From Paragordius varius (taxonomy: Eukaryota > Animalia > Nematomorpha): DNA of 64,000 bases. Position numbers and translations under genes: made by a program. The stretch spans positions 6,200,001 to 6,264,000 of the forward strand of contig OZ176051.1 of assembly GCA_964247055.1 (NCBI GenBank), read 5' to 3'. Below are positions 5,718 to 50,800 of this stretch, one piece after another (within the stretch, counting starts at the first letter, position 1; every line of letters begins with the position of its first letter). A model generated the notes under the pieces. It saw only the letters and a list, made by a program, of their open reading frames with translations, was not told the origin of the DNA and did no database searches.

Positions 5718-8700
5718 CTTCCCACTCTCACGAATCCACAATCTCTTGTAGCCGATGATAATGAAGATAATAAGAAGATATTTGAATCATTTACACATGA
5801 TATGGCACACAATTTGCCTGACACCGCCTTCAAAGATTTCGAAAAATGTCCCATGTTTTCGAAACTTGCTTCTAAATCATCGACCGTCACCACCCTCGAT
5901 CATCCTGAGTTATCTCCCCAATCTGGTGATAATAATACGCTTCATAAACAGACATCCTCAATTAAACAAATTCCCATTCAGGTTGAACAACATAGTGTTA
6001 ACGATAAAGAGCCCAATAAGGATAAAAATAGAAATATGATTAAAACAAAGGAAAATGAACAACCTCATCCATCAGAATACAATAGCAATCATTCTACTGC
6101 CGGTACCAATAATACTCATTATCATCCAAAAAATAAAAGTGGTAAGGCACATGATATAAGGCAAAGATTGCAACAAAAATTGGCGGCTTCTCATCATCAA
6201 CACCATAATGATTGTCAGCATGGTGAACATTCACATCATATGATGAATAATTTAGGTTTTATATCTTTTTAAGGGTTATAATACAAAACGAGAGAGTTAT
6301 TAATGGCCATTTCGGTATTTTAAATGATTAAAGGAACTCTGATTTATATCTCATTGGTATGTATTACTCATTTTTATTAATTACAAATTAAATTGTAAAA
6401 AAAATACAGTAGCGCCTGTTCGATATGAAATATCATATTAGCAATCAAAATCGAATGTCTAATACAGGGGTGTCCAACAGGGTACTCGCGACCACTAGTG
6501 GCTCATTGAAAATTTTGAGTGGCTCTTTGAAAATTTTGAAAAAAAAATTTTTTTAAAAAAAAAATAATTTTTAATTTTTTTTAAAAATTTTTATATGTAA
6601 AATATGCATTTTTATTTTGACATTTAAATTATTTTTAGAAACTTTTAATAAAATTCTTTATTATAAATATCTATCATCGCATTCATTTAATCATTTATAA
6701 AACACATTTTTCCTGCATGTTATTTCCAACTTCAAGATGACTTTCACATTAAATTAAAACATAAAATTACTTGCAAAAAATAGGTATTAAAAATAATTTA
6801 TTTAGCTTTCATATATTATATATATATTTCGTGTTAAAGCTTATCTGTGTTGAGAATAACCATTGTGTAACGTCTACGCAAATAAGGCATGCACACATAA
6901 AAAGAACTTGTGATATAATAGCCAGTCACTTTTTTATTTTGGTTTTCTTTTTATCGCTCAACTCTATTTTAATATACCATATTGCTATACGTGAATAAAT
7001 CTTTTCATTTGGTGCCGTAGCAAAGGCATCTGATACCTACTTTTGACGAGTTGGCCACCAAAGTGGCAAATGGGATAATTTTTTCCACTTTAGACCTGAA
7101 AGATGCTTACTTACAATTTCCGATAGACCGGGCGTCACAGACGCTAGTAACCATCACAACTCACAAAGGGTTTTATGCTTACCAACGACTTCCATTCGGA
7201 TTAACTTCAGCACCTATGATCTTTCAAAGATGCATGGACTATCTTTTAAAGGACATACCTGGTATTTCTGTGTACCTGGATGATGTCTTAATTTCCGGAG
7301 CTACCAGGGAGGAACATGATCAAAGATTAAGGGAAGTATTTAGAAGGTTACAAGAGGCGGGATTACGATTGCGCCGAGACAAATTGCAAATTGGTATCTC
7401 ACGAGTCAAATACATGGGGTACGTAATTTCTGACCAAGGTATTGAGCCGTCCAATGAAAAATTAGAGGCCATTAAAAATTGTCCGGCACCTACAAACAAA
7501 ACTGAGCTACGTTCGTTCTTAGGCTTAATAAATTTTCATGAGCGGTTTATACCAAACTGTCACCCACCTAGCAACCTTACACAAGATAAGTGGAAAGAAT
7601 ACATTGGCGGTGGACCCCGGCAGATGATAGTGAATTCGCGAAAGCAAAAAGCTTGCTAACCAGGCCCCCCGCTTTAATGCCATTTAACGACCGTTTTTCC
7701 TTGTTGATCGAAACAGATGCTTCCAACAAGGGGTTTGGGGCAATACTGTTTCATAAGACCCCACAGGGGAAACGCCCAATTTTTTACGCGTCACGAACTT
7801 GTTCAATAGCAGAAAATGGTTATTCCACGATCGAAAAAGAGGCCAAGGCCATAGTGTTTGCCCTTGAAAAATTTAAATACTTTATATATGGAAGACCGTT
7901 CGAGATATATACAGATCATAAACCGCTAGTGTCACTATTTGGGCGGAAGAGAGACATCAACAACATTAATAATAGCAAACTGCTCAGGTGGATATCGAAT
8001 ACCATCGGGTACGAGTATGAAATATTTTACAAGAAAGGGGAATAAAACTTAGCCGACAGGTTGTCGAGACTTCCCATAGAGCATAGCCAACCAGGTCATG
8101 AAGATGACGCGGCCACCAAGCAGGTACGATTTTTGGCTCTAAAAACGCTGGATGTAAATAAGAAAGTGGTCGAAGAGGCAACGATCACTGACCAACGGTT
8201 ATCAAAAGTTAAAAATGCTCTGAGGACAAACAGTTGGATCGACGAAGATCTGAAAACTTTTTTATTTTGGTTTTCTTTTTATCGCTCAACTCTATTTTAA
8301 TATACCATATTGTTATACCTGAAAAATCAACTTTTCATTTGGTGCCGTGACCAGGATCAGAACCTGGCGCTCTGCAACGAAATTGTCTCTCCTGCGTTTG
8401 TAATGCCCTAGGTACGAATCCTCTAATGACTGCGGCGGCAAACACAGCTGACCTGGGCCAGCCAGAGATGGCGTATTATCCGGAAGGCAGCAGAAACCAA
8501 GATTGGATTGATGATGATGATATTTATGAAGCCAATTATATACGTAGAAGGAGTGATCAGGTCATAACGCCTGAAACTAATGTGTTGACGCCGACACAGC
8601 AGGATTCAAATTATGTTATGGATCAAGCGTATTCAACATACCATATGCAAGACGGTATCTATAATTTTAGTGATCATGGCGATAAACAACAAATCCAATT

Positions 8701-11700
8701 CCAAATGAATCCAATCTTAACCGATGGCGATGGGCCGACACCAATACATACTAATAATAATAATTTCGTTGTTAATCAAAACTTAATTAATCCCAATTAT
8801 GATGAAATGAGTAGTATAATTCAGAATCAAAGACAAGCCAATACCATTCAAAGTGGTTCTACCTCCTATTCGACGACACGTCGAAATATATCTTCTATTC
8901 TGATGACAAATCAACCAAAATACGCCAATTATCAACAATACTATGCAACACGATCTCAGCAACAAGAAGAACCTACATTTTCTAAATTAATGTTACCCGT
9001 GTATGTTTGTGATAGTGTTACAGGTCAATGCCCATGTTTACCCAATGTAACTGGATTGGTATGTGACACGTGTGCCCCTAACCATTGGAACTTAGCTTCG
9101 GGTCGAGGTTGTGAACCATGTTCATGTTGCCTGGCCTCATCCCTCAGCGGTCCGCAATGCAATCAAATGAGTGGACAATGTACGTATAAACCGGGTTTCG
9201 GCGGTCGAACTTGCTCTGATTGTAAAGACAATCATTGGGGTGATCCTAATGTTAAATGTTATCAATGTTCAGGTGACTCCCGTGGTTCAACCTCTTACCA
9301 ATGTGATCGGAAAACGGGGAAATGTGCTTGTCGACCTGGCATTACAGGCATAAAGTGTGATATGTGCGCCCGTGGGACGATTGGACAAGTCCCGGCTTGT
9401 CGTGAATGTGGACAATGTTTCAATGATTGGGATAGAGCTATACAACAACTTTCAACTGAAACCAATTCTCTGGCTGAAAAGGCTGCTCAAATCAAAGATA
9501 CGGGTATAGCCTCCAATTATTCAGAAAGTTTTAAGGGACTTAATAATAAAATAAAGGCTATTCATGATACACTTAGGAGGGCAAATTTAACAACGCAAGA
9601 TCTCAACACTATATCAAACCAAATTGAGGATCTAAGGAAAAAATTATCTCAGCGCTCGGATGAACTAGAAAATCTCATATTGTTTTATGCGTTGTAGGAT
9701 TCTCAAATACCACTTTAATATTTTCCGTTTTTAACCGTTTTGTACTTAAACTCGGGTCAGACGTCGATGTGTCTATTCTTGCATCAGAATCATTTTGAGC
9801 GGGTGTAGTCATTTGGGACAGCAAGTTTCAAATGTGTTCTTCTCAATGCACCAAATATTGCGGCAACAGTATGGTAAAAACAAAAGGATTAGCAATGCAT
9901 CCTCGCAATCAGTAGAAGGATTTACTTTCCATATGTCAGGCGTCGATGCTTTGGTGTGTAAAAGAGATAGATTGGAAAAGATAATCATTGATGCTGCAGC
10001 TAGACAGAAATTGGAATACAAAGCGTACGAAAATGATGATAAAGACAATTGGTATGGAACTATGGGTCCATTTGCAGGATTGATAGTTGGTTATGATTGC
10101 AGGTTCAAAGAACTGCGTTTAGGGCAATCAAGCTTTATCTGCAAAAAGGACATAAGCTTAATAATGCAGAAAGGAAAATATTGGTCAGTTCTTACGGTTT
10201 TTAGGCCAGACACCATGTGTTACTTGATGGGATTACATTTCCACCTGAAAAGAAAGCTTCAATTGCATTATAGTTTATTAAAAGTGTCATTTATTGATCC
10301 AGAAAATTCATTTCAAACGATTCCCAAGGAAAAAGCCTTCTTTAGCGACTGGGTGCTCAGCTTGTGGAATTTCGACCCAACTTCCTATATCACTTGTGTC
10401 TTCAAACTTGTGCCATTCTACTGTGCCCATGTCTAATATGAATAACAACCAAATTGAGGATCTAAGGAAAAAATTATCTCAGCGCTCGGATGAACTAGAA
10501 AATCTCATTGATATTCATGCCAATGTTAATAAACGCATAACGGATTCCATGGCCAAATTAGCCGACATTCAATCCGCAACACAAATATTGCGGAACCAAA
10601 CGAAGGCTTTGGAAGAAAATACCACACGGTTACAAGAGGCTGATCTTGAAGGTGCATTCACCATCATACGTGAAAGTTGGGGTAAAACTCAACAACTTAA
10701 ACAGAATGTCACGAGCGCAATAAGGACAGCTAATGAATCACGTGCTATGCGTCAAAATGTCGGCAAGTAATAAGGATCGCATAGATAAAACCGTAAAAGC
10801 TAATCAACAAATTTTGGTGAAACTTGAAACGCAAATGACCTCCATGAAAAAGGAAGGCTTGGGACAACTCAACACTATGATATGTGATGGTAAAGTGCGA
10901 CCATGTGACCCTGTATGTGGAGGGGCGGGTTGTTCCACCGATAAGGGCGTTATTCATATTAGACATGGGCACAGTAGAATGGCACAAGTTTGAAGACACA
11001 AGTGACATAGAAGTTGGGTTGAAATTCCACAAACTGAGTATCCTGTCGCTAAAATGGCTTTTTCCTTGGGAATCGTTTGAAATGAATTTTCTGGAATCAA
11101 TAAATGGCACTTTTAATAAACTATAATGCAATTGAAGCTTTTTTTCAGGTGGAAATGTACTCCCATCAAGTAACACATGGTGTCTGGCCTGAAAACCGTA
11201 AGAACTGACCAATATTTTCCTTTCTGCATTATTAAGCTTATGTCCTTTTTGCAGATAAAGCTTGATTGCCCTAAGCGCAGTTCTTTGAACCTGCAATCAT
11301 AACCAACTATCATCCCTGCAAATGGACCCATAGTTCCATACCAATTGTCTTTATCATCATTTTCGTACGCTTTGTATTCCAATTTCTGTCTAGCTGCAGC
11401 ATCAATGATTATCTTTTCCAATCTATCTCTTTTACACACCAAAGCATCGACGCCTGACATATGGAAAGTAAATCCTTCTACTGATTGCGAGGATGCATTG
11501 CTAATCCTTTTGTTTTTACTATACTGTTGGCGCAATATTTGGTGCATTGAGAAGAACACATTTGAAACTTGCTGTCCCAAATGACTACACCCGCTCAGAA
11601 TGATTCTGATGCAAGAATGGACACATCGACGTCTGACCCGAGTTTAAGGACAAAACGGTTAAAAACGGAAAATATTAAAGTGGTATTTGAGAATCCTACA

Positions 11701-13820
11701 ACGCATAAAACAATAGAAAATCCGAAGCGCCCAGCAAACACACTTAATTCAGACCAGAAAGTTAAATGTCTTGTATTTGCTGCAGATGCAATGAGAGAAA
11801 TATAAGATTGGATGGGATTACTGGTATAAAAACGACAAATCTTTTAAATGTGATTATACATCACTTAGTTTGGGACAGCAAGTTTCAAATGTGTTCTTCT
11901 CAATGCACCAAATATTGCGCCAACAGTATGGTAAAAACAAAAGGATTAGCAATGCATCCTCGCAATCAGTAGAAGGATTTACTTTCCATATGTCAGGCGT
12001 CGATGCTTTGGTGTGTAAAAGAGATAGATTGGAAAAGATAATCATTGATGCTGCAGCTAGACAGAATTTGGAATACAAAGCGTACGAAAATGATGATAAA
12101 GACAATTGGTATGGAACTATGGGTCCATTTGCAGGATTGATAGTTGGTTATGATTGCAGGTTCAAAGAACTGCGTTTAGGGCAATCAAGCTTTATCTGCA
12201 AAAAGGACATAAGCTTAATAATGCAGAAAGGAAAATATTGGTCAGTTCTTACGGTTTTCAGGCCAGACACCATGTGTTACTTGATGGGATTACATTTCCA
12301 CCTGAAAAGAAGGCTTCAATTGCACAAAGCGTGGGATTGGGAACAACAATAGTTGCTTTAAATAGAAACAAAACAGATTCTTTTAACACTAAATGGAAAA
12401 CTGCTTTAAAAAGAGCTATAGCACATTTTCCTGATGCTGAAGTGGTGACTGCCGTAGCATCTCACAGTCCTGATGAGTTGAAGCCCTTAGTTGAGGCCGT
12501 TTGTGACTTGGCGTTATTGATAAGTACTAGAGAAGCCAAGAGAGGTTATCTCAGTGCATGTCATATTATGAGGTACCTGTCTGAGGATGAAGAGTATAAG
12601 ATACTACATGGCAAATTACCTAAATCCCCATCAACTTTGACTGAAAGAGCGTCGAAGCTAGATTTCTCCGGGAAAGGTCTGTATTTTTGCTTGAACGGTG
12701 TCATGTGTGCATTGGGCTGTCGTGTTCCTACATTATACCTATAAGTTTATTTTTAAAATAAAAATATAATAAAAAAGAAAAATAGGTTGAAAAATAAAAA
12801 TACACCCAAAAATTGTGGTTAAATCAAAAGTTAAAAATTTTAAGGACCAACTTGAAGTGGTCAAGGAACAACTTGAAGTGCAAATGGTATATTAAATTGA
12901 AATTGTGAGAAAAAATACCGTGGCGCCTGTTCGATGTTAAATATCATGTTATCAATAATAATAGAGCTAATCAAAATAGAAAATCAAACACCTACCAATA
13001 GCCATGAAAATAGCATACCCTTTTAGCCAATTACAAAACCGAGATGACTAATATTAGCTCTCGTTAGTGTATTTCAAATGAGACATATACAGCAAAAACA
13101 AAATCTGATTAATAAATTTTTTTTTCTTTAAAAAATATATAAAAAGAAGCAGACGAAAAAAATATGATAAATTATAATGGTTATAATATAATGGTGAAAA
13201 AATGCGAATGATTCGATTTTTATTTGAATACATCGTGTGTTTTTCTAAATTTCTAATTAATTGAATTATAATTATAGTATTTAGGGCGCTGGACTTTTAC
13301 ACTGTTTTTAAGGTAGTTCATAAAACCGCGCAATTTTTTATTTTCTGTGTTGGCCCTTGGTAAGCGAGTGTTAAAGCTTTTTCAAATCTGAATAAATTTA
13401 AGTCCTTAACCTTCGATAAAAAGGAAAAAAGAGACTTTAAACTGCATACTAGCTTGTATATATTACTTGAAAAGGAAAAACTTAATATTAAGGTCGTTTT
13501 TTGAAACACATTAATTTATCTTTTGGCCTATACCCCATATCCAAAATTTTTGTTAACTTATAACCTCAAAATCTACAATATTTATAGATAACAAGAGCAA
13601 ACCCAAGAATATAGCTAATCATTTAACATCTAATCATAATAATAATAATATATCTACTGGCAATAACAAAAATAATGATAAATTGCCATCTTTACCCAAT
13701 GATTCAGAGTCACTAAATGACGCAAGTTGCAATCACATTGATTTAGAACAAGATGATAAGATTACCCGGAATCCGGCAGAAAATTCAAATAAAAAGAAAT
13801 CTAAGAAAAAGAAAAAATAA
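5718..13820 (+). CDS. Unidentified spliced gene, last two visible coding exons (5718-6255 and 13588-13820); low-complexity N/H/K-rich product ending [10 protein letters not shown]; upstream exons not resolved
   Basis: Exon 5718-6255 follows TAG, is open for 538 nt and ends in a phase-1 donor (TTA G|GT). Exon 13588-13820 follows TATAG, is open in the matching phase (G+AT=Asp) for 77 codons and ends in TAA. Confidence 0.6.
6465..6545 (+). mobile_element. hAT-like transposon left-end remnant
   Basis: CAGGGGTGTCCAAC is a typical hAT terminus. A related sequence (GGTTGTCCAACAGG..GTGGC..AAAATTTTGA.TGGC) occurs at ~57576-57650. Confidence 0.5.
6848..7007 (+). mobile_element. Probable short Ty3/Gypsy LTR (~160 bp, TG...CA)
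   Basis: Ends TTCA at 7007, 2 nt before TGGTGCCGT (truncated PBS, 7010-7018). Contains TATAATA followed by CAGT, and AATAAA near the 3' end. Its 3' ~80 bp is repeated at 8256-8337. The 5' boundary (TGTTGAG at 6848) is inferred. Confidence 0.6.
7021..8255 (+). pseudogene. Ty3/Gypsy pol fragment: reverse transcriptase + RNase H + start of linker; frameshifted, no integrase
   Basis: [73 protein letters not shown]. Frameshifts near 7560-7600 and a premature stop at 8043-8045 ([13 protein letters not shown]). Confidence 0.95.
8256..8337 (+). mobile_element. Second copy of the LTR 3' part (R-U5-like)
   Basis: Near-identical to 6928-7007 (TTTTTATTTTGGTTTTCTTTTTATCGCTCAACTCTATTTTAATATACCATATTG...CTTTTCA) with a few differences near the 3' end. 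Confidence 0.85.
8340..8357 (+). promoter_or_regulatory. Primer-binding site complementary to tRNA-His 3' end
   Basis: TGGTGCCGTGACCAGGAT, 2 nt after the LTR CA, is the reverse complement of ATCCTGGTCACGGCA-CCA, the 3' end of Drosophila-type tRNA-His(GUG) as I recall it. Confidence 0.85.
8426..9697 (+). other. 423-aa chimeric ORF: retroelement-leader-derived N-terminus (inferred) + unidentified segment + laminin-beta LE/coiled-coil fragment + 6 codons of antisense viral sequence
   Basis: A single open frame crosses at least two, probably three, unrelated sequence sources. Expression is unknown. Confidence 0.55.
9001..9678 (+). pseudogene. Intronless laminin beta-chain fragment, part 1 (last LE/EGF repeats and start of coiled coil)
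   Basis: [38 protein letters not shown]...[23 protein letters not shown]...CGQCFNDWD matches the laminin beta domain III/II junction. Some LE cysteines are lost (CTYKPG, CSGDSRG). Confidence 0.9.
9679..9812 (-). pseudogene. Viral nucleoprotein EVE: N-terminal 45 codons, antisense
   Basis: Reverse complement of 11581-11714 with ~3 substitutions. Confidence 0.8.
9810..10267 (+). pseudogene. Viral nucleoprotein EVE: internal fragment, copy 1
   Basis: About 99% identical (by eye) to 11868-12323; has an extra TAG in the downstream frame. Confidence 0.8.
10268..10446 (-). pseudogene. Probable viral NP C-terminus + 3' UTR, antisense
   Basis: Minus strand reads [45 protein letters not shown], resembling orthomyxovirus NP tails that end in a G-x-(F/Y)-F-x-G motif. 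Confidence 0.55.
10447..10948 (+). pseudogene. Intronless laminin beta-chain fragment, part 2 (coiled coil to Cys-rich beta-knob)
   Basis: Resumes with a 62-nt repeat of the end of part 1, then continues to [11 protein letters not shown]..., a frameshift near 10765, and [18 protein letters not shown] (beta-knob type motif). Confidence 0.85.
10949..11127 (+). pseudogene. Probable viral NP C-terminus + 3' UTR, second copy (sense, with small indels)
   Basis: Reverse complement of 10268-10446 at roughly 93-95% identity. Confidence 0.55.
11128..11582 (-). pseudogene. Viral nucleoprotein EVE: internal fragment, copy 2 (antisense)
   Basis: ORFs 11580-11113 and 11296-10745 reproduce the peptides of copies 1 and 3 with a few substitutions. 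Confidence 0.8.
11581..12710 (+). pseudogene. Endogenous orthomyxovirus (quaranjavirus-like) nucleoprotein gene, N-terminal ~375 codons, two frameshifts
   Basis: Reconstructed: [15 protein letters not shown]...KRLK...[14 protein letters not shown](fs)KIGWDYW...[26 protein letters not shown](fs)...[32 protein letters not shown]...[14 protein letters not shown]...LCDLALL...DFSGKGLYF. These motifs match quaranjavirus NP as I recall it; not database-verified. Confidence 0.8.
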
Positions 13821-25676: not shown

Positions 25677-27240
25677 TTTTGTTATTTTGTTTTATAACAT
25701 TATAGTTACAACATTTTTCAAATGTCTTTCCTTCCTGAGTACAACGGCCAGCTTATGGAAACCAACATATAATATCACATCTTACACTGGTCACACAACA
25801 TATCTCAATTGCCATATACCTAATGACACCTATCACGATAATACAGTTACAAAATTAGAATATTTTTCGCAACTCTTTATTACTTATATAAATATACATA
25901 GATATCTTTAAAATATTTACATATATGCAGTAAAAATTGAATTATACGCACAAAACATAAAAACATATGGACAAATATTTTTTTAAAAAAGACCAACTTT
26001 ACTTTTACTAACCTTAAATTTTCCTAGAATTTTAAATAGATAATAATTGATTGTGTCAACAAACTCTATTTCATACTTGCATAATAAAAAAATATGTTAT
26101 ATTTGATAAAATCAAGTATATAAAACACCGCGAACTTTTTTTAAAAAATATTTGTCTCCATATTTTTAAATTTTGTCTTTATAATTTCAAATACATCCAG
26201 ATCTCATGGGTCAGGTTGGATAAGGATGGACGAAATTACATAATTTATATTGGAATTGAAAAGATTTTGGATGATCCGAGATTCAGCCTTCTGGATGAAA
26301 GGCAATCAGATTTAAAGCTAAAGATTGCATATACCAAGAAAAGTGATGAAGGCTTTTACGAATGCCAGTTATTACCAAATGTCGAGAAAAAAATTGCCAT
26401 AATATATAACTTAACCGTTTTGGATGGTATTCATTTTTTATTACTATATTTGTTATTCTGTGCGATCGATCAAATGAGTTTTCCGAAAACTAAAATAGTA
26501 GAAAAAATATTATAGTTATTTAAATATTATTTGACAGTTAAATTAAAAAAATTGCATCTGTTAATAAGGGTAACAGATCTGAAAAGATAAGGGTTACGCA
26601 TTTAATATCGGAGTGCATCGCAACATAAATTGTTATGGAGTTCTCTATTGAAAATTTAGGGAAACCCATTGGTCTTTATTATCCAGGTTTCCGTAGCCTT
26701 TCGAATATTTATGGGTGAAATATAAGCTTATATATTATGCATTTTATCATAATCTCTTTATTTGCAAATCAGCCATTATTAAAAATATTTTTTAGGTTCT
26801 AAATAAACCAAAGCTATAAAACCGTTTTAGGTCTGGCCTAACGACACTCGACCCATTTTTTTACTGATTTTAAATTTTGATGGTCATTATATTAAATTTA
26901 TCAAAAAATTTATATTCTACAATAAAATATGTTAGCCCAAAATTATTCTCAACTTCCTAAATCAGCCAGATTCGTAGCCAACGATATAACAGCAAGTAAA
27001 TATACTCTTGTAGAGATATATATATCTTTTTTAAATTTAATCGTTTAGATTTTGCCAGCAAAACGCATAAAAACCCTGTAATATATATTAATATTTGTGA
27101 TTATAGATTATGTTAAACGATCTCACACCTCATCCAGCAAAATAAAATATTCTACAATATTCAAATCGAAATGCATTCAAATATGTTCAAATTTGGTACT
27201 ATACCTAATCCTTTCCATAATAATTTCAATGAAAATTTGA
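25677..27240 (+). CDS. Dpr/zig-8-like Ig-domain cell-surface protein, probably GPI-anchored; first exon not located
   Basis: Exons 25677-25845 (hydrophobic leader..NITSYTGHTTYLNCHIP), 26201-26426 (ISWVR..DPRFSL..LKLKIAYTKKSDEGFYECQL..YNLTVL), 27107-27240 (DYVKRSHTSSS..LVLYLILSIIISMKI*). Phases are compatible. Confidence 0.75.
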
Positions 27241-33900: not shown

Positions 33901-35878
33901 CAGTTTGATCAATTTGATCTCGAGGTGCGTATACACTCACCTATTTTTGAATATATTTATTTCATTGGTGTTAAAATCAAACAAAAATAAAATATAAAAG
34001 ATAAAAATTATTAAAAATAATGGATATTAATATATTAAGTCAAGTTTTACAGACAATTTAAATTCAAATTCAGTAAGAAATATTAAAACGCCAAATATAC
34101 TTTCACTCCATTTTGTGAGGTTTGCCTTATAGCTTCAAAATCGCAAATGACCCAAGCTACCAAGTAAGTACTCATTTTCACCGAAGTTTTGAAGTAATCT
34201 CTCTTTAGTATTGGGGATATTGGGCTAATATCTGTCCAATTATTGGGCATATTTGAAAGTGAAATTAGGGCATCGGGTCGATCGATTGCAATGGTGAAAA
34301 GTGCTTTAAACTCAGGTTCATCCATACAAGGAAAAGCCCGCCGTGCGAAATTTGGTGAGAATTGAGTTGAAATTATGTAACTAAAATTATACAACTACAC
34401 ATCAAAACCAGTAAGTAATATTCCCATATATATAATATTATTTACTAAATTTATGACACATCCAACAGGTTTTTTTTATTATTAAAGGAAAGAAGCAATG
34501 GAAGATATATTAACAAATTTTGCATTAATTGTTTCATACATTCTTTTCAAATTATTTTTTTTCTCTAAGCATTTTGATTACAAATCACAAAAATTTTAAT
34601 TTCATTTGCCATCACCAATAAAAATTCATCAATAAATTATTATGTAGGCAAAAAAAATACTGTTTTTGCCCACTAGAATCCGTATATGAACTCGAATATA
34701 GCCCATAGAAAGATTGACCAATTACACCCTCATACTCAATATTAAGGGTGTATTGAGCGCCTTGGTTAAGTACCGTAGTTTGTATTTGATTAGAAGCGTT
34801 AGCAGATTTATTATGGAGACCCCTTAAATTTATGCGAACCATTTCAAAATCGTCATCTTGATATGTTATCCACTCTGGTGCAATAATGAAAATAGAGCTG
34901 AGCTTATCATCAGTATTCTCAGCTAAGGTTACATTCCTAAAGCGTAAGCCTTTATTATTCAACATAATATCTGATGTATCATTCAGGACAGTAAATATCA
35001 ATGCAACCGTACCTATGTTAAAATATCGAAAGATAAGCTAATATAAACAAAAATATATTGCTAAATGAATGGCTTAAAGTTGGTTCGTTTTTTGTTTTTA
35101 GCTAATAACATAGTTTTTTACTGTTAATGCTATCTGTTATAGAAAATAGCTATATTATAAAGTTTTATAGACATCAATACCTTAAGTAAATTTCATTTTA
35201 AAATCAAATTGTCATATATATACCTTTAAATGAGTGTCCAATACGAGGCAATGTTGATATTATATCGGTCCAATCAGGACTTATCGTTATATTGTAACTA
35301 ATAAGTTGTAGGGTTTTTGGTAATCGATAGTTGGTACTTTCGAAAAAAGTGTCTGAATCTGACTGAATAACAAAACTTCCCATTTTTATAGATTGAAATA
35401 TTCCGTAAATGATGATGCATGCATAAAGCAGTGATAATAAAACCTATGGAAATAAATTTGTGTGAATAAGGTCAGAAAAAAAATATATCTATTATTGGTG
35501 ACCTAGAAAATGCAATAAAATCCTATTTCTATTATAAGGTATGATAAGCTAAACCCGTTAAAAAAACTAACAAACTGATACACGGCTAATTTTAAAGAAT
35601 TAACGATATTATTTTTATACAATTTGATTTACAAGTTTACAATGTATAAGTAAAAAGTCAATAAAATTGTTATGCCTGTTAAAATGCACTGGCGTATGTA
35701 TGAATGAGTTAATCCTGATTAATTAAATATGCAAAATTATTGTTGAATTTATGGAAAAATTTAATTGCAACCATTTTTGTAGTAAACATTTTGATGCTGG
35801 CTTAAGTCAATCGCCAAACAAACACAGTAGGGTATGGAAAAAAACAACAAAAATTACATTGTTTATTTCATTAAACAT
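27976..35878 (-). CDS. M1-family zinc aminopeptidase (aminopeptidase N-like), ~15 exons
   Basis: YRLPKT (35.3 kb), [40 protein letters not shown]|[21 protein letters not shown] (HEXXH-18-E), [19 protein letters not shown]-terminal exons at ~29.1-28.9 kb and ~28.2-28.0 kb. Confidence 0.92.
28495..28771 (+). mobile_element. hAT-like MITE (~280 bp) in an aminopeptidase intron
   Basis: Left GAGTGACCAACAC and right GTGTTGGTCACCCCTG are terminal inverted repeats. Related left ends (CA.GGG...CAACACAAATGG.TT.GCGGGC) occur at 23158, 29243 and 57014. Confidence 0.65.
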
Positions 35879-36342
35879 TTTATTTTTTCCATACACTACT
35901 GTGTGTTGCCAATTGACCAACTATAGTGCGAAATGAGCAACCATTAAAATGCATACTGTATTATTATTATACGCTACTGTATAATAAATTTGCACAAAAA
36001 CAATATATTTATTTTTCGCCAAAAGTAGATAGGACCCGTTTAAATAAATAGTTCGTATATCTGTAGTTTTTTTTTATTAAAAAATATAAAACTGATTCCT
36101 ATATCCTCGATTTTCGGCTTCATTAAAGATCTTAACGATTGCTTCTAACAACTAATAAATTGAAATCGGATTTCGTTTCTGTTTAAAAAGTATAAACAGA
36201 AAGTTATTTTTTGTTCTAATTTTCCCACTTAATAAATGAGCCCAGTTTTATTTTAACAATATTCAAATTATATGATAAAAACATTTCTAGCAATGAATAT
36301 GCAGTACACTTAACAAATTTTATCAGGTTGTAACCATATTAA

Positions 36343-36855
36343 CACTTGGGCACAACACATTCGTTTTAGCCCCCTGGTTCAAATTGGGGTCTTTGGTGAC
36401 CCCAGGCTTGTTTAAAATCAAACATTCCTAAAGATATGGAACAAATTGAAATCATTGCGATTGTTACCACTTAATCACCGAGTATTTTTTTATTTAAAAC
36501 AATTTTATATTATTTATTTCAGATAAACTTCAAAGTAAAAATTAGTCACCATGACATGTGTCCATTAGTTAAATAAAAAAACATTCTGTTTTTTATATCA
36601 AGGTTGGATATGAATAAAATAAAAAATTTAATTTTAGCGTTAGAATTAAATAAACAGATATTTCGCAAAATGTTGTAAAATTTAAATGCACATAACTTTC
36701 TTTCAAACTCAAATTTTATTTAGATATTATGGCTTATTCAATTTTTATTAGGACGGAAGCATAAATTTAATTTGGAAGCTTTTCTTTCAGTAGTTTTTTA
36801 AAGATATAAATTTAATTTAGTTTGGGGTCGAAGATTTTCCAACTTGTTTCGAAAG
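36343..36855 (+). mobile_element. Degenerate copy of the TTAA piggyBac-like MITE
   Basis: Starts TTAA-CACTTGGGCACAACACATT..TCAAATTGGGG and follows the family sequence through; the right end is decayed. Confidence 0.6.
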
Positions 36856-37789
36856 CGTTTTCAAAATTCAAAAATTAAATAAAGTTGGATTATAAACTTA
36901 AAGTTCATGCAAAAATTAAAATTAATAGCTTATAGAATATTCAAAAAATATAAAATATATTAGATATTCGATAAGTCTTAAATGTTATAATTAAATTTCA
37001 TATAAAACGCATAAGATGTTTTATAAATAAAAATAATACCGATTTCATAAAAGCGAATAATTATGTAATTTAAAAAATTTAAATTTAAAATTGGTGCATG
37101 AACATATAACATGTGTAGAAACTGACAATTAACACTTCATTACCTTTTTTTATTTTTGGTCCTAATTTACCATTTGAGGTTGTTTCATATCTATAGCTCC
37201 ATTTTGTAAATTAACAAAAATTAAAAGTTATTTTAGTTAAAATTTAATTATAAAACATTAATTGTTCTAATGTATCAGATGAAAAAGCTTATATTGTTTA
37301 AAGTTTTGTGATGTGACTTAGGAGTCATAGGGACAGCTTTAACACTTGATTACCTTTTCACGTTCTGTTCTAGTTTACTTGGGGTGGTTTTATATTCCAG
37401 AGCAGTATTTTGTAATTTTTTGTTAGTTGATATTAAGCATTGCACTCATTATATAGATAAAAAGGCTCCTATTTTTACAGTTTTAAGACTTCTAGAGAAG
37501 CGTCCCAAATTGGAACAGGTCGATTACAAGTAGATATTAAAATCAATATATATCAAGTTTTTGCCTAATTAGCCTCATTTAAAAATTAATTATTTACATT
37601 TTTTAACGATAATATTTATTTATATCCTGTTCGAGCGATTTTAACAATTCAGTTGAAATTGGGGTATCTCCGAGACGATATATAATTTGATATTTTCAAA
37701 AAACCACTTAAAGAAACGGTCTTAATTTAAATTTATCCTTCTATTCTTCGAAAAATTATATAAAAGCGCGGCTTAAAATTTAGACTTAA

Positions 37790-38368
37790 CACTTGGATAC
37801 AACACACTCATTTTAGTCCTTCGATTCAAATTAGGGTATTTGGATACCCCAGGCCAGTTTAAAATCAAATACTTTAAAAAGTATGGAAGGAATCGAAACC
37901 ATGGCAAAATTTTGCACTTATATAACATTTAAACCGAAATATAAAAAAAAATTTATTTAAAAATACTTGATATTACTTATTTTGAGCTAAAACCGAAAGG
38001 TACAAATTTCGTAAACGTAACATGTATTAAATTTTAAAATTAAAAAATAATACAAAATAAACCGCTTTTTCTATTTCTATCAATGTTAGATGTAATTTAT
38101 ATAAATAAAAGCTTTAGCTTTACCCTTAAAATTAAATGAAAACGATATTTTACAAAAATTTTCTAAAATAAAAATGGCGTCGAAGTAGTTTGAGATAGAA
38201 CTTTTTTTTCAAAACAAAATTTTATCAAGATATTTTGGCATATTTATATAATATTTATCAGGATAGAAGCATAAATTTAAATTGGGACCGTTTCCTTCAG
38301 TAGTTTTTTAAAAATTTTAATTGAAATTTAGTCTGGGGTATTTAGATACCCCAATTTGAATCGAAGTG
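37790..38368 (+). mobile_element. piggyBac-like MITE, full copy A (579 bp), TTAA flanks
   Basis: TTAA|CACTT...AAGTG|TTAA with internal inverted repeat CGATTCAAATT(G/A)GGGTA...ATACCCCAGG at both ends. Confidence 0.75.
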
Positions 38369-38399
38369 TTAAATAACCCATATGAACTACTTTGCAGCC

Positions 38400-38735
38400 A
38401 TTGTTATTTTACAACATTTTTGCAAAATATATATTTTTTAATTTTAAGCTAAAATAGCTTATTTTTTCTTTAAATCATATCTAAAATTGATCGAAACAGA
38501 AAAGTGGTATTTTTGTATTATTATTGTTATTGTTGCTAATGCACACATGTCAAGCCTAAATTTTTAAGTTTTTTTGAATGAATTTTCTATTTATTTGGGT
38601 TTATTAATGTTATATAAGTGCAAACTTTTGCCATGGATTCAATTACTTACATATTAAAGTATTAAATTTCAAAAAGGCCTGGGGTATCCAAATACCCCAA
38701 ATTTAATTTAAGAACTGAAATGATTGTGCTGTATC
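38400..38735 (-). mobile_element. Partial inverted copy (left half) of the same MITE
   Basis: GGCCTGGGGTATCCAAATACCCCAAATT...GTATCCAAGT is the reverse complement of the family left end. Confidence 0.65.
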
Positions 38736-38933
38736 CAAGTTTTACAGAATTATAAAAAATGGAGGCAAAAAGGTTTTTACAATTTTACATTTTTTCAAAA
38801 AAATATTTAGCTTAATGTGTCTAAAATGCTAAAAAGCTAATTTTTTCGGCCTAATACCTTAAATATTTTTAAAATATTGAATTAATCGCTTTGAGATTTA
38901 AACTACCCTAAAGTTTGTGAAACGTGTCTAATT

Positions 38934-38935
<2 letters not shown>

Positions 38936-38983
<48 letters not shown>
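38936..38983. repeat. (AT)n microsatellite
   Basis: Perfect AT run; similar runs at ~44833-44871, ~55433-55467 and ~63695-63714. Confidence 0.95.
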
Positions 38984-38989
<6 letters not shown>

Positions 38990-39359
38990 ATAAATATAAG
39001 TTTCTCTAAATTGATCAACTATATTATTAGATAGAACCAAAACAAAATAATTACGATCACCCTTTTTAAAGCTGTTTAATGACATCAATTAATGTGGGAC
39101 AGGAATCGCTAATTACCCCGACTCAAACAAAATATAGTGATTTGGTAATTTATCTTTTATAGTTTAATCTGAGAATTTGAGGGTTGAAAAGTAATAAGAT
39201 AATTAATATAGCTAATTTCATTTCTGTTCTCTTATATCATTTTATTGCTAAATGTATTTAACACCTCATTACTCTAGAATGGTTTTTATTTACAGAGCGA
39301 TATTAAATTCAAGTTTTTAAGCAGAGAAATATCGGGCCAAATTAGAAAATGTATTTAGC

Positions 39360-40496
39360 TTAACATTAGATCCAACACATTAATTTCAGTCCTTCGATTC
39401 AAATTGCAGTAGTTGGATACCCCAGGCATGTTTTAAATTAGATATTTCGAAATTAATTGAATTGAAACCATGACAAAAATATGCACTTATATAACATTAA
39501 TGAACCGAAAATATAATCAAGCTTATAAAATAATTGATATAACTTATTTTTAGGTGAAAACTTAGGGTAAAAATTTAGTCAACATGGCATGTGTGCATTA
39601 ATAAATTTAAAAATAATACAAAATAAACCATATTAACTGTTTCTATCAATGTTAGATGTGATTAACACTTGGATACAACACATTCATTTCAGTCCTTTGA
39701 TTCAAATTGGGGTAGTTGGATACCCCAGGCCTGTTTAAAATTAAATTCTTTAAATATGGAAGGAATCGGAACCATGGCAAAATTTTGCACTTATATAACA
39801 TTAAAAAAACCGAAATTTATAAAAAAAATTATGCAAAAATACTTGATATTCCTTAATTTAAGTTAAAACCAAAGGGCAAAAATTTAGTCAACGTGACATG
39901 TGTGAAATGGTAAAATTGAAAAATAATACAAAATAAAGTACTTTTTATTTCTATCAATGTTAGATGTAATCTAAATAAAAAATTCGCTTTAATTTTACCT
40001 TTAAAATTTAATGGAGACGATATTTTGCAAAAATTTTGTAAACTAAAAATGGCGTCGATGTAGTTTGACATGGAATTTTTTTTCCAAAATAAAATTTTAT
40101 TTAGATATTTTGGCATATTATAATTTTAGAAGCATATATTTAAATTGGGACCGTTTCCTTCAGTAGTTTTTGAAAAATCCTACTTAAATTTAGCCTGGGG
40201 TATTTAGATACCCCAATTTGAATCAAAGTGTTAAAATGAAAAATTAGCTTTACTTTAGCTTTAAAATTAAATAAACAAATATTTTGCAAAAATGTTGGAA
40301 AATAAAAATGGCATCGAAGTATTTTGATATGGAACTTTTTTTTCAAAACTAAACTTTATTTAATTTCGGCTTATTTTTATAATTTTTTTTAGGATAGAAG
40401 CATAAATTTAAATTGCCGTTTCTTTCAGTAGTTTTTCAAAAATATCAACTTTAAAATAGTTTGGGGTATTTAGATACCCCAATTTGAATCGAAGTG
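39360..40496 (+). mobile_element. Nested pair: full MITE copy B (39666-40230) inserted at a TTAA inside copy C (39360-39661 + 40235-40496)
   Basis: TTAA at 39662-39665 and 40231-40234. The flanks rejoin into the contiguous internal sequence seen in copy A. The outer right end is GAAGTG|TTAA at 40496-40500. Confidence 0.75.
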
Positions 40497-42552
40497 TTAA
40501 GCGCATAAGAATGTAAATTGTAAGCATTCTTTTAAATGTTTCGCCCCCACTTATTAGATTTTTTTTAACATTTCATTCATCTTCATTATTTTGCGCGCGA
40601 AGACATTTTATGGTACTTTTTGACCCCAGAGCCTAAAGTTGTAAACAAACTATGAGAAAGCTGTTATGGTTAAATATAATTATCAAACCCTTATGTATTA
40701 TTTTTAACTTCTAATTTTTAAAATTAGGATCAAATCAGGATAATAACAAATAGCTGATATAAAAATCTATAAATATCAAAAATTTACTGATTAATTGTAA
40801 TTTACAGCTTATCTAAGTTATTTATATATTTTTTTAACCATAAGATACATTTATTTCCATTTTGTAGCGATAAAATAAAGGAAAATATTGGGGATGAAAA
40901 AGTTTGAAATGGCATTCTTAATTTTAGATTAAAATTTTTGTATCATGCGCCCAAAAGACCATTATTTGGGCCAATGCTAAAGATATTGAAATTTTAAATA
41001 ACCCTGGAATTTACCACAAAATTAATTGTTTCATAATGAAGGGTTTGAAAATTTATCGAAAAAATGGTTAGTATAGAACTCTCAATATTATATACATTTT
41101 CCCATTATTATCCAATAATGCACAATCTTTCTAATCTACCCGTTTACTACGCTTCTTTCCAACTAATCTCCTATGACGCTAAAATTTAGATTTCATTGCG
41201 GCGGGCTCTTTGACAACGTGGCATTAATTACCATATTTTTATGCTCTAATATTCTCTAAATTGCAACTTCTTCAAATAAAACATTATTGTTAACCATAAG
41301 GCCCAGTGGTATTTAAACTGCAGCCCTAATATAGCTTTGTGGCCTTGTATATATTTCACAATTTTATTTAAAAGCAAATATCTACTAATGTGTCAAACAT
41401 CTATTCAATATTTTTTTATATTATGTACGGCCCCTAAGACAAGAAATCCCCTTAATTTTCGATGAGTATCACTTGTATAGCCTATTGTGCATATTTGATA
41501 GGCCCAAAATTATGTTGTAGATTTGAAATTACATGAATTATAAGTATAGCATTAGACCGCGTTTTTACTAAGCGCTTCAAAGCTATTTTTTTACACATAA
41601 CGAATATATAATATATTTTTAAATAAAATTTATTTGATATTCAAATTTGATTATTTGGATAGTGTTTTGTCCATACATATAATCTAGAACAGTGTGTAAT
41701 TCATTGATTCCAGCTATACAGAATAATTTCAATATACTAAGTAAATCAATAATTATTAAATAATGACTCCAAAAAACCCGATGAGCCTTTAAATATTTTT
41801 AACAATAGTTGATTAATTTAATCCTTAAAAATACTTAATAAAAATTGTCATCATATGTGATGTCAGTTTTACATAAAAATTTGGAATTAACAAGAATATA
41901 TACTTGAGCCATCATTAAATCGATTTGAGATCTCATTCGTTTGAGTTGATTGCTTAACATAAATATATTTTTGCGTATAAATCCTGAATCATTGATTGAT
42001 TTAATCTATACCAATGGATATAATATTACATATCTAATTTAAAAAATTAATTCGACTAATATCATTATGAAAATTATTTTGATGTTACCACCACTCACTA
42101 CAGGTATTAATTGGGTTTATACACAGCAAAGACATGTAAAGATATTACCTGACTAAATACTTTAAAATATTTTTAATATATCTTGTACCATTTAGAGGAA
42201 TGTATTATTACCAGATTTATAAATTTGTGATATACATATTAAAATTAAATGTATTGTATATCCATGTTTTTTTAACAAAACAGCCGATGAAAGGACATTA
42301 AACGAATTTTAATATAGAATTGATGGAAAAGGTGAACTTTATATGGGTAATGGAAAAGCAGCTTACAAGACAAAGTTAAAACATTTAAATTTGGTTAAGA
42401 CAGAAAACAAGTCCGTAAAATATTAAAATGGATAAATTAAACAATGAAATATAAATATATAATAAATATTAACAAGTTATAAATAAATTGATTGATTGAT
42501 ATACTTTAATTGATATTAAATGCTTATATTAATAATAAGCAGTTATTAAAAT

Positions 42553-44874: not shown

Positions 44875-47800
44875 AGATTATATTAAAAAATCGTGAAATC
44901 ACATTAGCAATAATTATTATATTATTATTGAAATTATAATTCAACTAAAATTAAATGAATTTTATATGGACAATTTTCGATTACTACAAGTAATCTTTGT
45001 CAAACGTAAAAAAAATTAAAATATAAATTATATATTAAAGTTTAAATTAAAAATATTTATCTTTTTTGTTAAACCATTTTTATTCACCACATTTTAAAAC
45101 TGTAAATTTTTGTAGTTTATTAGCATTTATTGGCCATTTTTCTTACAATAATCAATTAAAAAAAGAATTATATATATATTCCCATAAATTACTCTTATTC
45201 GGTGGTATATAATCTTGATAAGTGGAATTTAAACGAAACAATTTAGAATTGACTAAACTATGGCCAAATCTTAGAGCAGCGGTTGCGAATACATTGGATA
45301 TGGAAGCATCAATGGTGGCATCATAATTATTAATATTATTAGTGGAATATCCTTTATATGTGGATAAAAAATCAATAGTTTAGGATATATTTTTATACAA
45401 TAAAATTCGCTTAAATCATATTTAAACCAAGATTACCTTAAACTTATAAACCGAGTGAGAGAGAGCCAGAGATATATATATTTACCATTTACAATTCATA
45501 TTCACCCTTAGACAATTCAAATTCACCCTCGAACAATTCAAATTCACCCCAAAAATAAATTATGTGTTTTTGGGATAACATAACTCACTATTTATATGAA
45601 ATATTTTTATCACATAGTTTATTATTTTTTCAGCATTATATTAATTTTAAACAGAATTTCATATATTAAAAATATTCTAAAATAAAGGTAATTTTTAATC
45701 TCAAAAAACGCATAATTTATTTTAGGGTGAATTGAATTGTTCAAGGGTGAATTTGAATTCAAGGGTGAATTTAAATGGTATATATATAAATTGCAGTGAA
45801 TTAAAAGATATTGGTGGTATACTTTGTTACATGTCTAAACAAAAAAAGGAAAACCTATTAACTTCATGGCTCGTTTTCCAATAATAATAGGTAACCAATC
45901 TCTGTATGTTATGATCTGCATTTGTGCACCCACAATTTTTCGAGCTTCTTCATACAACACGTTGCCTGTCCAATGGGGATTAATTTCCTTTAATCTAAAT
46001 TTTAATTGCCATATTTTTGACAAATATTTTTATGAATTAACGCTTCTTTCCATCGAGAGCGCATTATTATAATCCCTTTTAAATGCATTTTTAACCTCTG
46101 TTATGGAAATTAAATGAATGTTTTGCAAAAATTTCGTTCATGTTTGCTAATTATTAACCGTTATACCGTTTTTTATCTAGTCTTTTACACTTAAAATAAA
46201 TAACCAATTAAGTAAAATTATTTTATTTCGATTAAATAAAAGTTTAATCATCCAATTTTTTACCATTGTTTTATTTGGCTAACTGATAAACATATGGTCA
46301 CTTTTAGTGGTTAATTATAAAAACATTCGTTAAGCCTATATTTAAATTATATATACGAGGTAATCTTTGCAAATGAGTTTATAATTATATATATCAAGCT
46401 AAACTTTTTATACTCATATAATAAATTTATAGATGAATAGTGTCACTACTTGTCAACTATGGTATTATGGTGTCTCATCCATAAAGTATGCATCGACAAT
46501 AAACCGAGTTGTTCATTGGCTCTATGATCGCCTGCTAAAAAACATGGGTATCTATTGGACAAAAAATGCATAAAAAATATTTTTATAAAAAATGACTTAA
46601 TCCTACTTATTATTTGCCAAACTCCCCCTTCCAATTTTGCAATCCATAGAATTGCGTGCATCAAAGGGTAGGAAACCTTTATCATTCCTAGTTTTCTCAG
46701 TAATTCCCTTTTTCAAATATCCCGTAGGTGTTTGCGACCCATCATCTGTGATAAAATATGGGAATTTAAAAGTCATCACATTAGTTTTTTTACAAAAAAT
46801 AATACTTTTAAACTCCTTGATTTGAAGTTCTGTCTCTGTGTTTGATCCGTAAACATTGGAAGCATCTAGATAAACTGTAACAGTATTAATTTGTTCCCTT
46901 GGTACAAAGGATCCATAATTTAAAATGGAAGAACCATTTCCCCCCAAATTGCTGAAAATGGATGAAGGTCCGGTTCCACATACATGGGATGATCTTACGA
47001 ATTCTATGCATCTAATTTATTGAAGAAGTCGGTTAACATATATCATTAAACACTATGAGTAAAAACATTTTGCTAGTTTTTGTGAATAATGGCAAAAGAT
47101 TTGACAATAACCATCATGGCCTAAAGCTGGAAAAAAAACGAAAAAATGCATTTTATATGTTCCATTTATCCGATATTATCGTTCAAATACTACAGTCAAA
47201 AATAATAACTCATTCTGTAAATATAATTTAATTAAATTTTTGAATAACACCAATTGATAAAACGTAATTTACCGTATGAGTAAAAATACATTGCTAGAAA
47301 GTTATTAGATATTACTAAATAGCACATACAACTAAGGGCAGTATTATTGGCTTATAGTTATTTTTTTACTTTTACTATTATTAGCCAATAATAATTCTCT
47401 TTGCTGCATATGCTATTTGGCAATAATTAATAACTACATATACTTACTCATACTGTAATTTCGTATTATAAAAATTATATTTATTATATCAATTTACTCA
47501 TATGGCCCAATGCGTTCGTGTTTATTAGCACCAAATGGGTATATCGGAAAACATGGTATGCTTCTCAAACAATGCTCTGCACAAGGTGTCACATCAACCC
47601 AACTTGGTTGACTCAGAGCCGGCAGGGCGAAATCCAAATCATGATCTAAAAACTGACCCCATTGCATAAGCATACCTAAGATTAAAGGTTATGTTAAAAC
47701 AAAAATCTGCCAGAATTCGGTTAATGCGGCTTATTTTTGTGGAATCAAATTTTCGAAAACACCATAGATATAAAACCTTATTGGGGGGAAACGCATAGCT

Positions 47801-50800
47801 TTTTTAATTTTTAATTGAAGGATAATTAGTTAGTATGAACATTATGAGATTGAGGATATGTCAGTAACAATGTATTGACTTTAAATTACATACTCAATGT
47901 CAAACAAATAAAAAAACACCGATCGTTTTTAGCCATTTTACAGGCTTTTAAAACAATTATTTTACCGTATTAAAGATTTGGCACAAAAGTAATAGTAAAA
48001 ATATTTAACTTCTACACATATTTAAATTAAATATATATATTATAAACTGAAAGTTCTCATATACAGCATTAAAGTATATTTATATTTTATTGGGTTTAAG
48101 GGTTACACTCAGAGATTTTGGGACACGTAAAATATCATAAAGATTTCACTGTGGAGATTTTAACGCTCCTAATTTTCTGAAAACTTATAAAATATAAATT
48201 AGTTGTTTTTAACCTGAATACATTGTTTGCGTTTCAATCTTCGTAGTTTTCGCAAGCAAAGTAGATAACATCCTTGGGTTCGGCAAAGATCTGAAAATTT
48301 GGTCATTTTTAGTCCCATTAAGTAAGGAAATGTTGTAATTGTGAGCTCGTATTTTCCAACCTTTAGAGACAAAAATATAATGTTTTAAACTATGCTTCAT
48401 TTATAATATTAATTTTTTGAACAATAAAAATACCGTTGGGTGAATTGAACTTATTTTCATAATTAGGGGGAAGAATCCTGACAAAAGGCATGTACGAAGC
48501 CCCTTGGTAAACGTTGTCCAGATTGTTATATGTACCATTTATTGAACGATATTTGCTAGTTTGCAAGTCTCACATATTATAGAATAAATTATAGAGGTGT
48601 TCTTCAAAATACTATTTAATTTATTTACAAAAAAACTGTGAAAATGAAACCTTTAACCGATGTAAATACTGTTTTTTGTTCCAAGGTAGGCGTACAATCT
48701 GTCATGTTTGCAACTATGTGAAGATGCGATAGCGACAAAAAATGATGCCTTTTAGCCTTTGAATCTTATTTAAAAAAACGATGAAACGATCATGGTTATT
48801 CAAATTTTTTGATTATATAAAATGATGATAGATTAATTTATTACCGTTTAAAATTTTAACTAAATGGTCCTGGCTAAAATTGATTCTTTCAATGTGATCT
48901 TCTAAAAGATTGTAAGTTCTTTGAAACACATCTCGTAACCTTGCTTCATTCTGAGCAGTATGTCCGTTGGTTTGATATAGCAAACCCTTTAATTCACTAA
49001 AGTTATGAAAACATTAAATATTTCTCAATAATTAATAAGTTTAAAAAAATAATATTATTTTAATATAATTATATTTTACCCAAAATTAGATGGTATATGG
49101 TTACGTCTTAATTGGCTGATAATGTTAAATATGGCTGTATCCCGCTCATTCGTTTCATTTAAAAGGTCTAATGTAATATCCATATCAGGATTCCGATATT
49201 TCGCATAATAACTTTGCGACTTACGACTACCCAACTCATTTTTATTGATCAGGCTTATTCTATAGGTTGGAGATTTGATAACTATAAATTTGCATGCAAC
49301 ATTAGCTTAATTTACATCAATATATTTTGGTGTAAAGTATTTTAAATTTACCTTTCAACTTGCCACTTTCGTGGCGGTAAATAGCTTCACAAGAGTATCG
49401 GCCCTCGTCCAAAGGATCGATATTCATTATACGCAAATAATTAACATTGTCATTGTTATGGTTTACAACATAATATTTTTCATTTTGGCCTTTCTTTACT
49501 GTTTGATCGATGATTGGTAAATCAACTTCATCTTTCAACCAAATAATCGAAAAATTTCCATGGTATGACAGAGGTATAAAGGCGCAAGGTAAACTTATAT
49601 TTTGTCCATAAGAGAGTTGAAAATCGTTTTGTGGAAGAATATTGTCATTACCATTAGGTATCTAACATAAATAGGGAATTTATAATATATTTGCCTAATT
49701 AAAAGAAATTTAGAAAAAAACTCTATAACTGCCATCAAATATTCCAATACAATTTACGCGAAATACAATTAATCAACATAACTAATGTGTAAATGGTAAA
49801 TAAATTTCTTATAGGTAAAATGAAATAGTAATAAAACTAAAGGAGATTTTTGTAAAAAATGTGCTCATCAAAATAATCTTTAATGATACATCTATTCGAT
49901 TTGCAAATGGATTTAAATCTGCATTTGTTTCATAGTTTCCTTTGGGAGTCCTTTCTTCATCTACAGAGTTCAAGCGTTTTTGTCTAGGATTGATAGTGTA
50001 AGCATATTTTTTATTGTTATATGGTAAAAATGTTTCGGAAACTAAACGTATTCTATCAGTATTTGCCAAATTATTTGAGGCAAGTAGGGAAATATTGCAT
50101 GTATAAACATCTTCATCGGACTCCATAAAATTTTTTATTATCAGGCTTAGTCGATGCCTCCCGGTCGAATCAATTTTGATTGCATATTTTTTTGAAAAAA
50201 GTGGAATGGAAGAATTTAGGGTAATAGGGTTGACATAATCATTGCGATACAACATTATCGTTTTGTCTAAAGAAGTAACAGTATAAATATAAAATTTATT
50301 AGGAATTTCGACGTTATTTTAAATATAATAGTTTTTTAATTACATTTATTTAGGAACAACTATATCGTAATTCATAGAGATGTGAAACAACTAAAATCGT
50401 TTTTTATGTATTTTGAAAAACAACATAATTTACGAATTTAAATCGGATTTTCTTATATTTAAACCAATAGATAGCATGTTTCTGGTCTTTTGGTAATAAA
50501 ACTATTTTTAAAATAAATTTTTAATTAATTCCACCATTTGTTAATCAAGTTTTTTTAAATAAATTTCGTTTACAAAAGGAACTATTAATTCTAAAATTGT
50601 CAACATCATTAATTTGATTTCTTACAATTTTTGGGTTAAAATATATCATATAATAATATAATAAATGTCTTCTAATGTTGATTTATTACTAAAAAAATTT
50701 TACATTTTTCAATTGAGTTAAATTTATAACTTGCTTTCATCCATTCATATAGAGCAGGTGTGTTTGAATCGACATAAGGGCATGTGACTATCCTATCATA

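Follow-up and report, generated by a model that had tools for sequence, protein, structure and literature searches.

Within a 64,000-nucleotide stretch of Paragordius varius contig OZ176051.1, which we refer to as the window and whose positions are counted from its first letter, we characterized a long inverted repeat (9678–11715) whose arms are composed of viral nucleoprotein (NP)-like sequence. As judged by sequence similarity, the locus is a genuine non-retroviral endogenous viral element (EVE) of a known kind, originating from the NP segment of an insect orthomyxo-like virus. On balance we lean towards a chimeric origin by template switching, in which the viral sequence was fused on one strand with a retroelement and a laminin-like complementary DNA (cDNA), and by which the locus, if transcribed, would yield double-stranded RNA (dsRNA) and small interfering RNAs (siRNAs).

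Gapped blastn aligned arm 1 (9678–10446) to the reverse complement of arm 2 (10949–11715) with 97.1% identity over 770 columns, including 18 mismatches and 4 gap columns, around a spacer of 502 nucleotides (nt; 10447–10948). The repeat finder returned the same structure, termed hairpin 1, as three inverted pairs, 9678–10254/11139–11715 (577 nt, 98%), 10249–10384/11010–11145 and 10385–10446/10949–11010, as small indels shift the register and lead this ungapped tool to split the match into 577 + 136 + 62 nt. The arms align end to end across both internal junctions, and their inner ends fall at the same base. An earlier note on this DNA, made from the letters alone, had described an inverted repeat of 9679–10446 and 10949–11714, with a three-piece composition and a breakpoint common to both arms. 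Repeat finder and gapped blastn place these coordinates right within one base and agree with the estimated identity, and the alignment through both junctions with coinciding inner ends bears out the common composition. As 1243 of the 1344 21-mers with a perfect reverse complement in the window start within 9678–12324, hairpin 1 is not a chance structure.

The source of the arms was recognizable only via an exhaustive search of representative proteins and a profile of its matches, whereas Pfam and PDB sequence searches with the single open reading frames (ORFs) of the arms gave no match. Likewise, the 196-amino-acid (aa) ORF gave no match in the homologous-protein search within its length window. 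Exhaustive phmmer analysis of 1.84 billion representatives, using a 160-aa ORF from the core of the arms, resulted in 57 protein matches with a best E-value of 2e-13, many of them 526–553 aa in length, with the query always aligned to residues ~65–230. A profile of 13 NP relatives retrieved the Nucleoprotein of Raphidiopteran orthomyxo-related virus OKIAV180 as well as the Nucleocapsid proteins of Blattella germanica orthomyxovirus 1 and Phasmatodean orthomyxo-related virus OKIAV172, and the same profile matched PDB chains named Nucleoprotein by their depositors at E-values from 3.9e-5 to 1e-2. One of the NP relatives exhibited a Pfam match to Flu_NP below threshold (E-value 3.7e-4, 19.6 bits vs a cut-off of 25). 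The full-length relatives share 27–43% identity among themselves, and the nearest known NP proteins show about 30–40% identity overall with the locus. These comparisons support NP as the source of the arms, contributed by an insect orthomyxo-like virus that is not close to any of the relatives retrieved. The similarity to an RNA-virus gene is strongest for the core piece, with an independent E-value (i-E) of ~1e-29 against the profile of 13 NPs. Taking the assembly as correct, the element resides in a host chromosomal setting, a window of 25% GC with host exons, repeats resembling MITEs (miniature inverted-repeat transposable elements) and a retroelement fragment. The gene itself is truncated and broken, showing at least one stop and a frame change common to its copies, and no further NP-like or other viral ORFs were found in the 64-kb window.

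Three pieces of alternating polarity make up the mosaic of each arm, with the core oriented opposite to both end pieces. The core piece comprises about three fifths of the arm and covers profile positions 81–227 at the above i-E in all three copies present at the locus. The outer piece, about one sixth of the arm, opens a stretch that, combined with what follows arm 2, matches profile positions 4–64 at 6e-6. The inner piece accounts for roughly one quarter of the arm and weakly matches the last ~45 residues of six NPs in the same place and orientation, with tblastn E-values of 6e-4 to 0.2 for these six relatives and profile i-E values of 0.09 and 0.4. On these scores, the assignment to NP is clear for the core piece, supported for the N-terminal piece and weakly supported for the tail piece. 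The proposal that the arms are made entirely of NP is mostly right: it stands for the core and the outer piece, while for the inner tail piece the match is weak.

Without a break, arm 2 passes into a long NP-like fragment, colinear with NP, on the + strand that extends from a leader-like start to residue ~343–368. As the outer piece of arm 2 continues colinearly into this fragment, whereas arm 1 stops inside that piece, arm 1 is the derived copy. The fragment also contains the third copy of the core piece (11869–12324), which is 99.1% identical to the copy in arm 1 and 98.2% identical to the inverted copy in arm 2. Together with the latter it forms a nested inverted repeat, hairpin 2, with 456-nt arms of 98.2% identity and a loop of 287 nt, competing with hairpin 1 for arm 2. 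The earlier note had overlooked both the alternating polarity within the arms and this third core copy with its second hairpin. A foldback element, or a DNA transposon with terminal inverted repeats, was considered as well and ruled out, since the arms consist of viral coding sequence.

One frame change relative to the NP relatives is common to all three copies of the core piece, the copy in one arm carries an additional stop of its own, and approximately the last third of NP is absent save for the short tail piece. With every NP copy broken, no NP can be made, and a functional NP-derived host gene is thereby ruled out. The frame change in all copies indicates descent from one already altered template, be it an error-bearing cDNA or a defective viral RNA, either of them re-copied, or integrated DNA with a later duplication. 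Over 456 columns, the core copies have 2, 6 and 2 differences that are unique to the respective copy, a star-like pattern that does not give the order of events.

The ORF at 8426–9697 contains three Laminin EGF repeats (Pfam, 5e-25), with laminin beta-1 as the best PDB match. Laminin-like proteins align colinearly by tblastn at 9005–9676, 10444–10701 and 10769–10954, and this alignment is intronless with a single frame change. The spacer and the sequence to the left of arm 1 are a single laminin-like coding stretch with arm 1 sitting inside it, in agreement with the laminin nature that the earlier note had assigned to the spacer. Searches with the laminin-like ORF yielded unnamed fragments of 46–50% identity, from which no parent gene could be named. 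The first ~190 codons of this ORF (8426–9004) are rich in asparagine and glutamine and show no family match; this segment may derive from a further mRNA that was captured, or it may belong to a laminin-like paralogue of unusual build. Arm 1 is bracketed by a 62-nt laminin-like direct repeat, which is too long for a target duplication made by a transposase and fits re-copying after a template switch.

A fragment of a gypsy-type long terminal repeat (LTR) retrotransposon pol gene lies 1.6 kb upstream, and pol fragment, laminin-like stretch and long NP fragment are all located on the + strand. The same-strand adjoining LTR-retroelement sequence expected for template switching is hence present (RVT_1/RT_RNaseH, 7051–8045, +). 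The pol fragment is bracketed by direct repeats of ~91 nt resembling LTR ends, and the region from ~7000 to 12750 forms a GC island, with 35–45% GC within DNA of 22–30% GC and a host window of ~25% GC. Downstream, the search for another LTR returned nothing but a ~75-nt repeat. The local score of this repeat pair (6380–6454/12891–12965) was 44 vs 20 ± 3 for the null, and the pair is more diverged than the internal repeats.

Folding of 9678–11715 with ViennaRNA yielded minimum free energies of −1482 kcal/mol for the + strand and −1452 kcal/mol for the − strand, compared with −488 ± 8 kcal/mol for mononucleotide shuffles. The predicted folds comprise 750–756 arm-to-arm pairs with a longest perfect helix of 206–215 base pairs (bp), and a perfect partner in arm 2 is available for 448 of the 749 21-mers of arm 1. 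Pairing of arm 1 with arm 2 was still preferred when the third core copy was added to the fold. A single transcript would hold a long near-perfect dsRNA stem, as known for hairpin RNA (hpRNA) loci. Because the polarity alternates within the arms, a transcript of either strand would give dsRNA with both polarities of each piece, and the earlier expectation of a fold-back containing both viral polarities is matched by the predicted folds of either strand. The coordinates of the features are collected in Table 1.

Table 1 Features of the NP-derived inverted repeat and of the adjoining laminin-like and retroelement sequence, in window coordinates.
Feature	Position	Strand	Description
~75-nt direct repeat	6380..6454	+	83% to 12891-12965; pair brackets the whole island
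LTR-end-like direct repeat, copy 1	6928..7018	+	~91 nt, 93.5% to 8256-8348; ends in a stretch (TGG...) resembling a primer-binding site (PBS), by eye
LTR-retrotransposon pol fragment, gypsy-type	7051..8045	+	RVT_1 2e-26, RT_RNaseH 4e-29, RT_RNaseH_2 (Pfam)
LTR-end-like repeat, copy 2	8256..8372	+	Also ends in a PBS-like TGG... stretch; longer tail, well beyond 18 nt, read by eye as complement of a tRNA 3' end
423-codon ORF	8426..9697	+	Last ~225 codons laminin-like (three EGF repeats, then coiled coil); no intron
62-nt laminin-like direct repeat	9617..9678	+	Perfect copy at 10447-10508; pair brackets arm 1
Arm 1 of hairpin 1	9678..10446	.	Three-piece NP mosaic: outer antisense, core sense, inner tail antisense (vs + strand); 97.1% reverse complement of arm 2
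Hairpin 1 spacer (loop)	10447..10948	+	Laminin-beta-like coding sequence; first 62 nt are an exact repeat of 9617-9678
Arm 2 of hairpin 1	10949..11715	.	Same mosaic mirrored; outer piece runs unbroken into the long NP-like fragment
Hairpin 2 left arm	11127..11581	-	Core NP piece within arm 2; 98.2% reverse complement of 11869-12324
Long colinear NP-like fragment	11582..12744	+	~540-residue NP up to ~343-368; 1-2 frame changes, at least one stop, last third missing
Hairpin 2 right arm	11869..12324	+	Third core-piece copy, within the long NP-like fragment

The remainder of the window contains several host-like coding pieces, namely an ankyrin-repeat ORF (1767–2609, −), Ig V-set exons (26051–26515, +, and 34612–35001, −), an exon for the N-terminal part of a peptidase M1 (46603–46947, −) and one for an animal haem peroxidase (49809–50255, −). 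A 156-codon ORF rich in histidine and asparagine lies just upstream of the island (5802–6272, +) and has no family match. Short MITE-like repeats occur at 36339–40500 and 56760–57015 in direct and inverted copies that are 60–91% identical and contain a small palindromic core, and no RNA genes were found in the window by Rfam and ARAGORN. The neighbourhood is genic, with a single pol fragment and a single MITE-like family across the 64 kb, and not an obvious cluster landscape of PIWI-interacting RNAs (piRNAs) dense in transposable elements (TEs).

We arrived at the template-switch model because the pieces lie on one strand, the junctions are many, and stretches of 62 and ~91 nt are re-copied at two of them. 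In this model, a retrotransposon reverse transcriptase would have made a chimeric cDNA by switching many times among its templates, namely RNA of the retroelement, mRNA of the host, viral RNA in either polarity and probably its own product, and this cDNA would then have been integrated in the germ line. As infection by a negative-strand virus yields RNAs of both polarities, antisense pieces are readily accounted for. The two arms share their end base and abut different laminin positions there. This suggests that the three-piece unit was once a separate molecule with a physical end at that base, where it may have been entered or left twice. A later inverted duplication at the DNA level is possible. 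A transcript from either strand of the locus would be expected to fold back into a stem of ~770 bp that is 97% paired, or alternatively into the 456-bp stem of hairpin 2. Long fold-back transcripts are Dicer-2 substrates in insects, where they constitute the hpRNA-type endo-siRNA loci. By analogy, the Dicer-2 products would be siRNAs of ~21 nt and of both polarities, covering the 5' end of NP, residues ~80–230 and the 3' tail.

Several observations weigh against this model and its consequences. The PBS-like site had no tRNA-like match by Rfam or ARAGORN, leaving its reading by eye unconfirmed, and a complete LTR is not definable, just the LTR-end-like repeat of ~90 nt. The laminin-like stretch is taken as a processed cDNA from its context and its lack of introns, the NP similarity is weak for the inner quarter of the arms, and the frame change in all copies fits a duplication of integrated DNA equally well. 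Three of the window ORFs have no record in public gene calls, a weak negative because the look-up requires an exact full-length product. The nearest known viruses are far too divergent in protein to be siRNA targets, and at ~30–40% protein identity of the relatives, no known virus appears cognate for the small RNAs to match.

Alternatively, the locus could be an inert fossil, its inverted repeat being a by-product of cDNA formation or of a later duplication, silent or transcribed at noise level, functionless, and persisting as it is too young (~3% divergence). We consider this less probable, albeit a serious alternative, as it would readily account for the lack of promoter, transcript and small-RNA evidence, for the broken gene with its star-like core copies, and for the 22 of 770 columns at which the arms differ, which are transition-rich with indels as neutral decay predicts. 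Also consistent with a fossil is the absence of the window ORFs from public gene calls, transcriptome assemblies included, although this look-up has the weakness stated above. In contrast, transcribed long inverted repeats in insect genomes get diced efficiently, and the LTR-derived sequence upstream on the same strand could promote read-through. We regard it as rather improbable that the locus is a piRNA source, giving rise to 24–30-nt piRNAs from a long single-stranded precursor like most mosquito and tick EVEs, with the hairpin being incidental. Most studied arthropod EVEs do give piRNAs and adjoin same-strand retrotransposon fragments (10.1101/127498; PMC5497376; PMC6580184), as does this locus with the gypsy-type pol fragment upstream. 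However, the window, with its host-like exons and single MITE-like family, is not obviously TE-dense, and a 770-bp stem that is 97% paired is a canonical Dicer substrate.

An assembly artefact, in which a chimeric read or a mis-join created the inverted duplication, is very improbable. Long-read libraries do contain inverted chimeras, but artefactual palindromes are normally identical and free of a spacer, whereas the arms of hairpin 1 show 18 substitutions relative to each other as well as 4 gap columns, are embedded in different flanks and enclose a unique 502-nt spacer, and the third copy has differences of its own.

We compared the locus with known systems that share parts of its architecture. 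EVEs of segmented negative-strand RNA viruses are likewise integrated fragments with frame changes and stops, sometimes duplicated after integration (PMC6191289; PMC6580184). The present locus differs from these by its pieces of alternating polarity and by a long inverted repeat together with a nested one, and its donor virus falls in the insect 'orthomyxo-related' group, distant from the named NPs of that group. For mosquito EVEs adjoining same-strand Ty3/gypsy or BEL/Pao fragments, template switching has been proposed (10.1101/127498; PMC5497376). As in those mosquito loci, EVE and LTR-retrotransposon fragments are adjacent on the same strand; here, however, host laminin-like cDNA and re-copied junction stretches are involved in addition, the surroundings are genic instead of a TE graveyard, and the predicted product is dsRNA and not a single-stranded piRNA precursor.

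With respect to the hairpin itself, Drosophila hpRNA fold-back transcripts are processed by Dicer-2 and silence their gene of origin (PMC10317233). These loci resemble hairpin 1 in the inverted duplication of coding sequence, the loop of a few hundred nt and the hundreds of bp of near-perfect predicted dsRNA, but differ in that the source here is a viral instead of a host gene and that the hairpin here is known from sequence alone. Tomato endogenous pararetroviruses with inverted repeats are major sources of siRNAs (PMC9868043). At the tomato 'TSA' loci, integrated viral sequence similarly gained an inverted repeat by chance, and heritable RNA-based immunity via hairpin transcripts and siRNAs has been proposed (PMC9868043). 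That system concerns a plant, a DNA pararetrovirus and measured 22-nt siRNAs, whereas the present one concerns an animal host, a negative-strand RNA virus and a sequence-based prediction. The hairpin architecture is unusual for animal EVEs; we came across no long hairpin among the insect RNA-virus EVEs described in the literature searched, an absence there that is not proof.

Arthropod EVEs are thought to act, if at all, through piRNAs from single-stranded cluster transcripts, while the siRNA pathway is the main antiviral pathway of insects. The locus could be a germ-line-fixed, expressed hairpin EVE that feeds Dicer-2 and confers inherited siRNA immunity of a sequence-specific kind against a circulating orthomyxo-like virus, which we consider unlikely. 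If true, such a locus would be an animal counterpart of the plant inverted-repeat endogenous pararetroviruses, distinct from the piRNA route of mosquito EVEs. A near-perfect 770-bp hairpin EVE would then feed the siRNA pathway directly and would represent a natural counterpart to the hairpin transgenes employed for virus resistance in insects and plants. As to the formation of EVEs, the locus would provide an unusually legible record, in which a single strand combines retroelement and host mRNA sequence with viral RNA in either polarity and carries re-copied stretches where the parts join.

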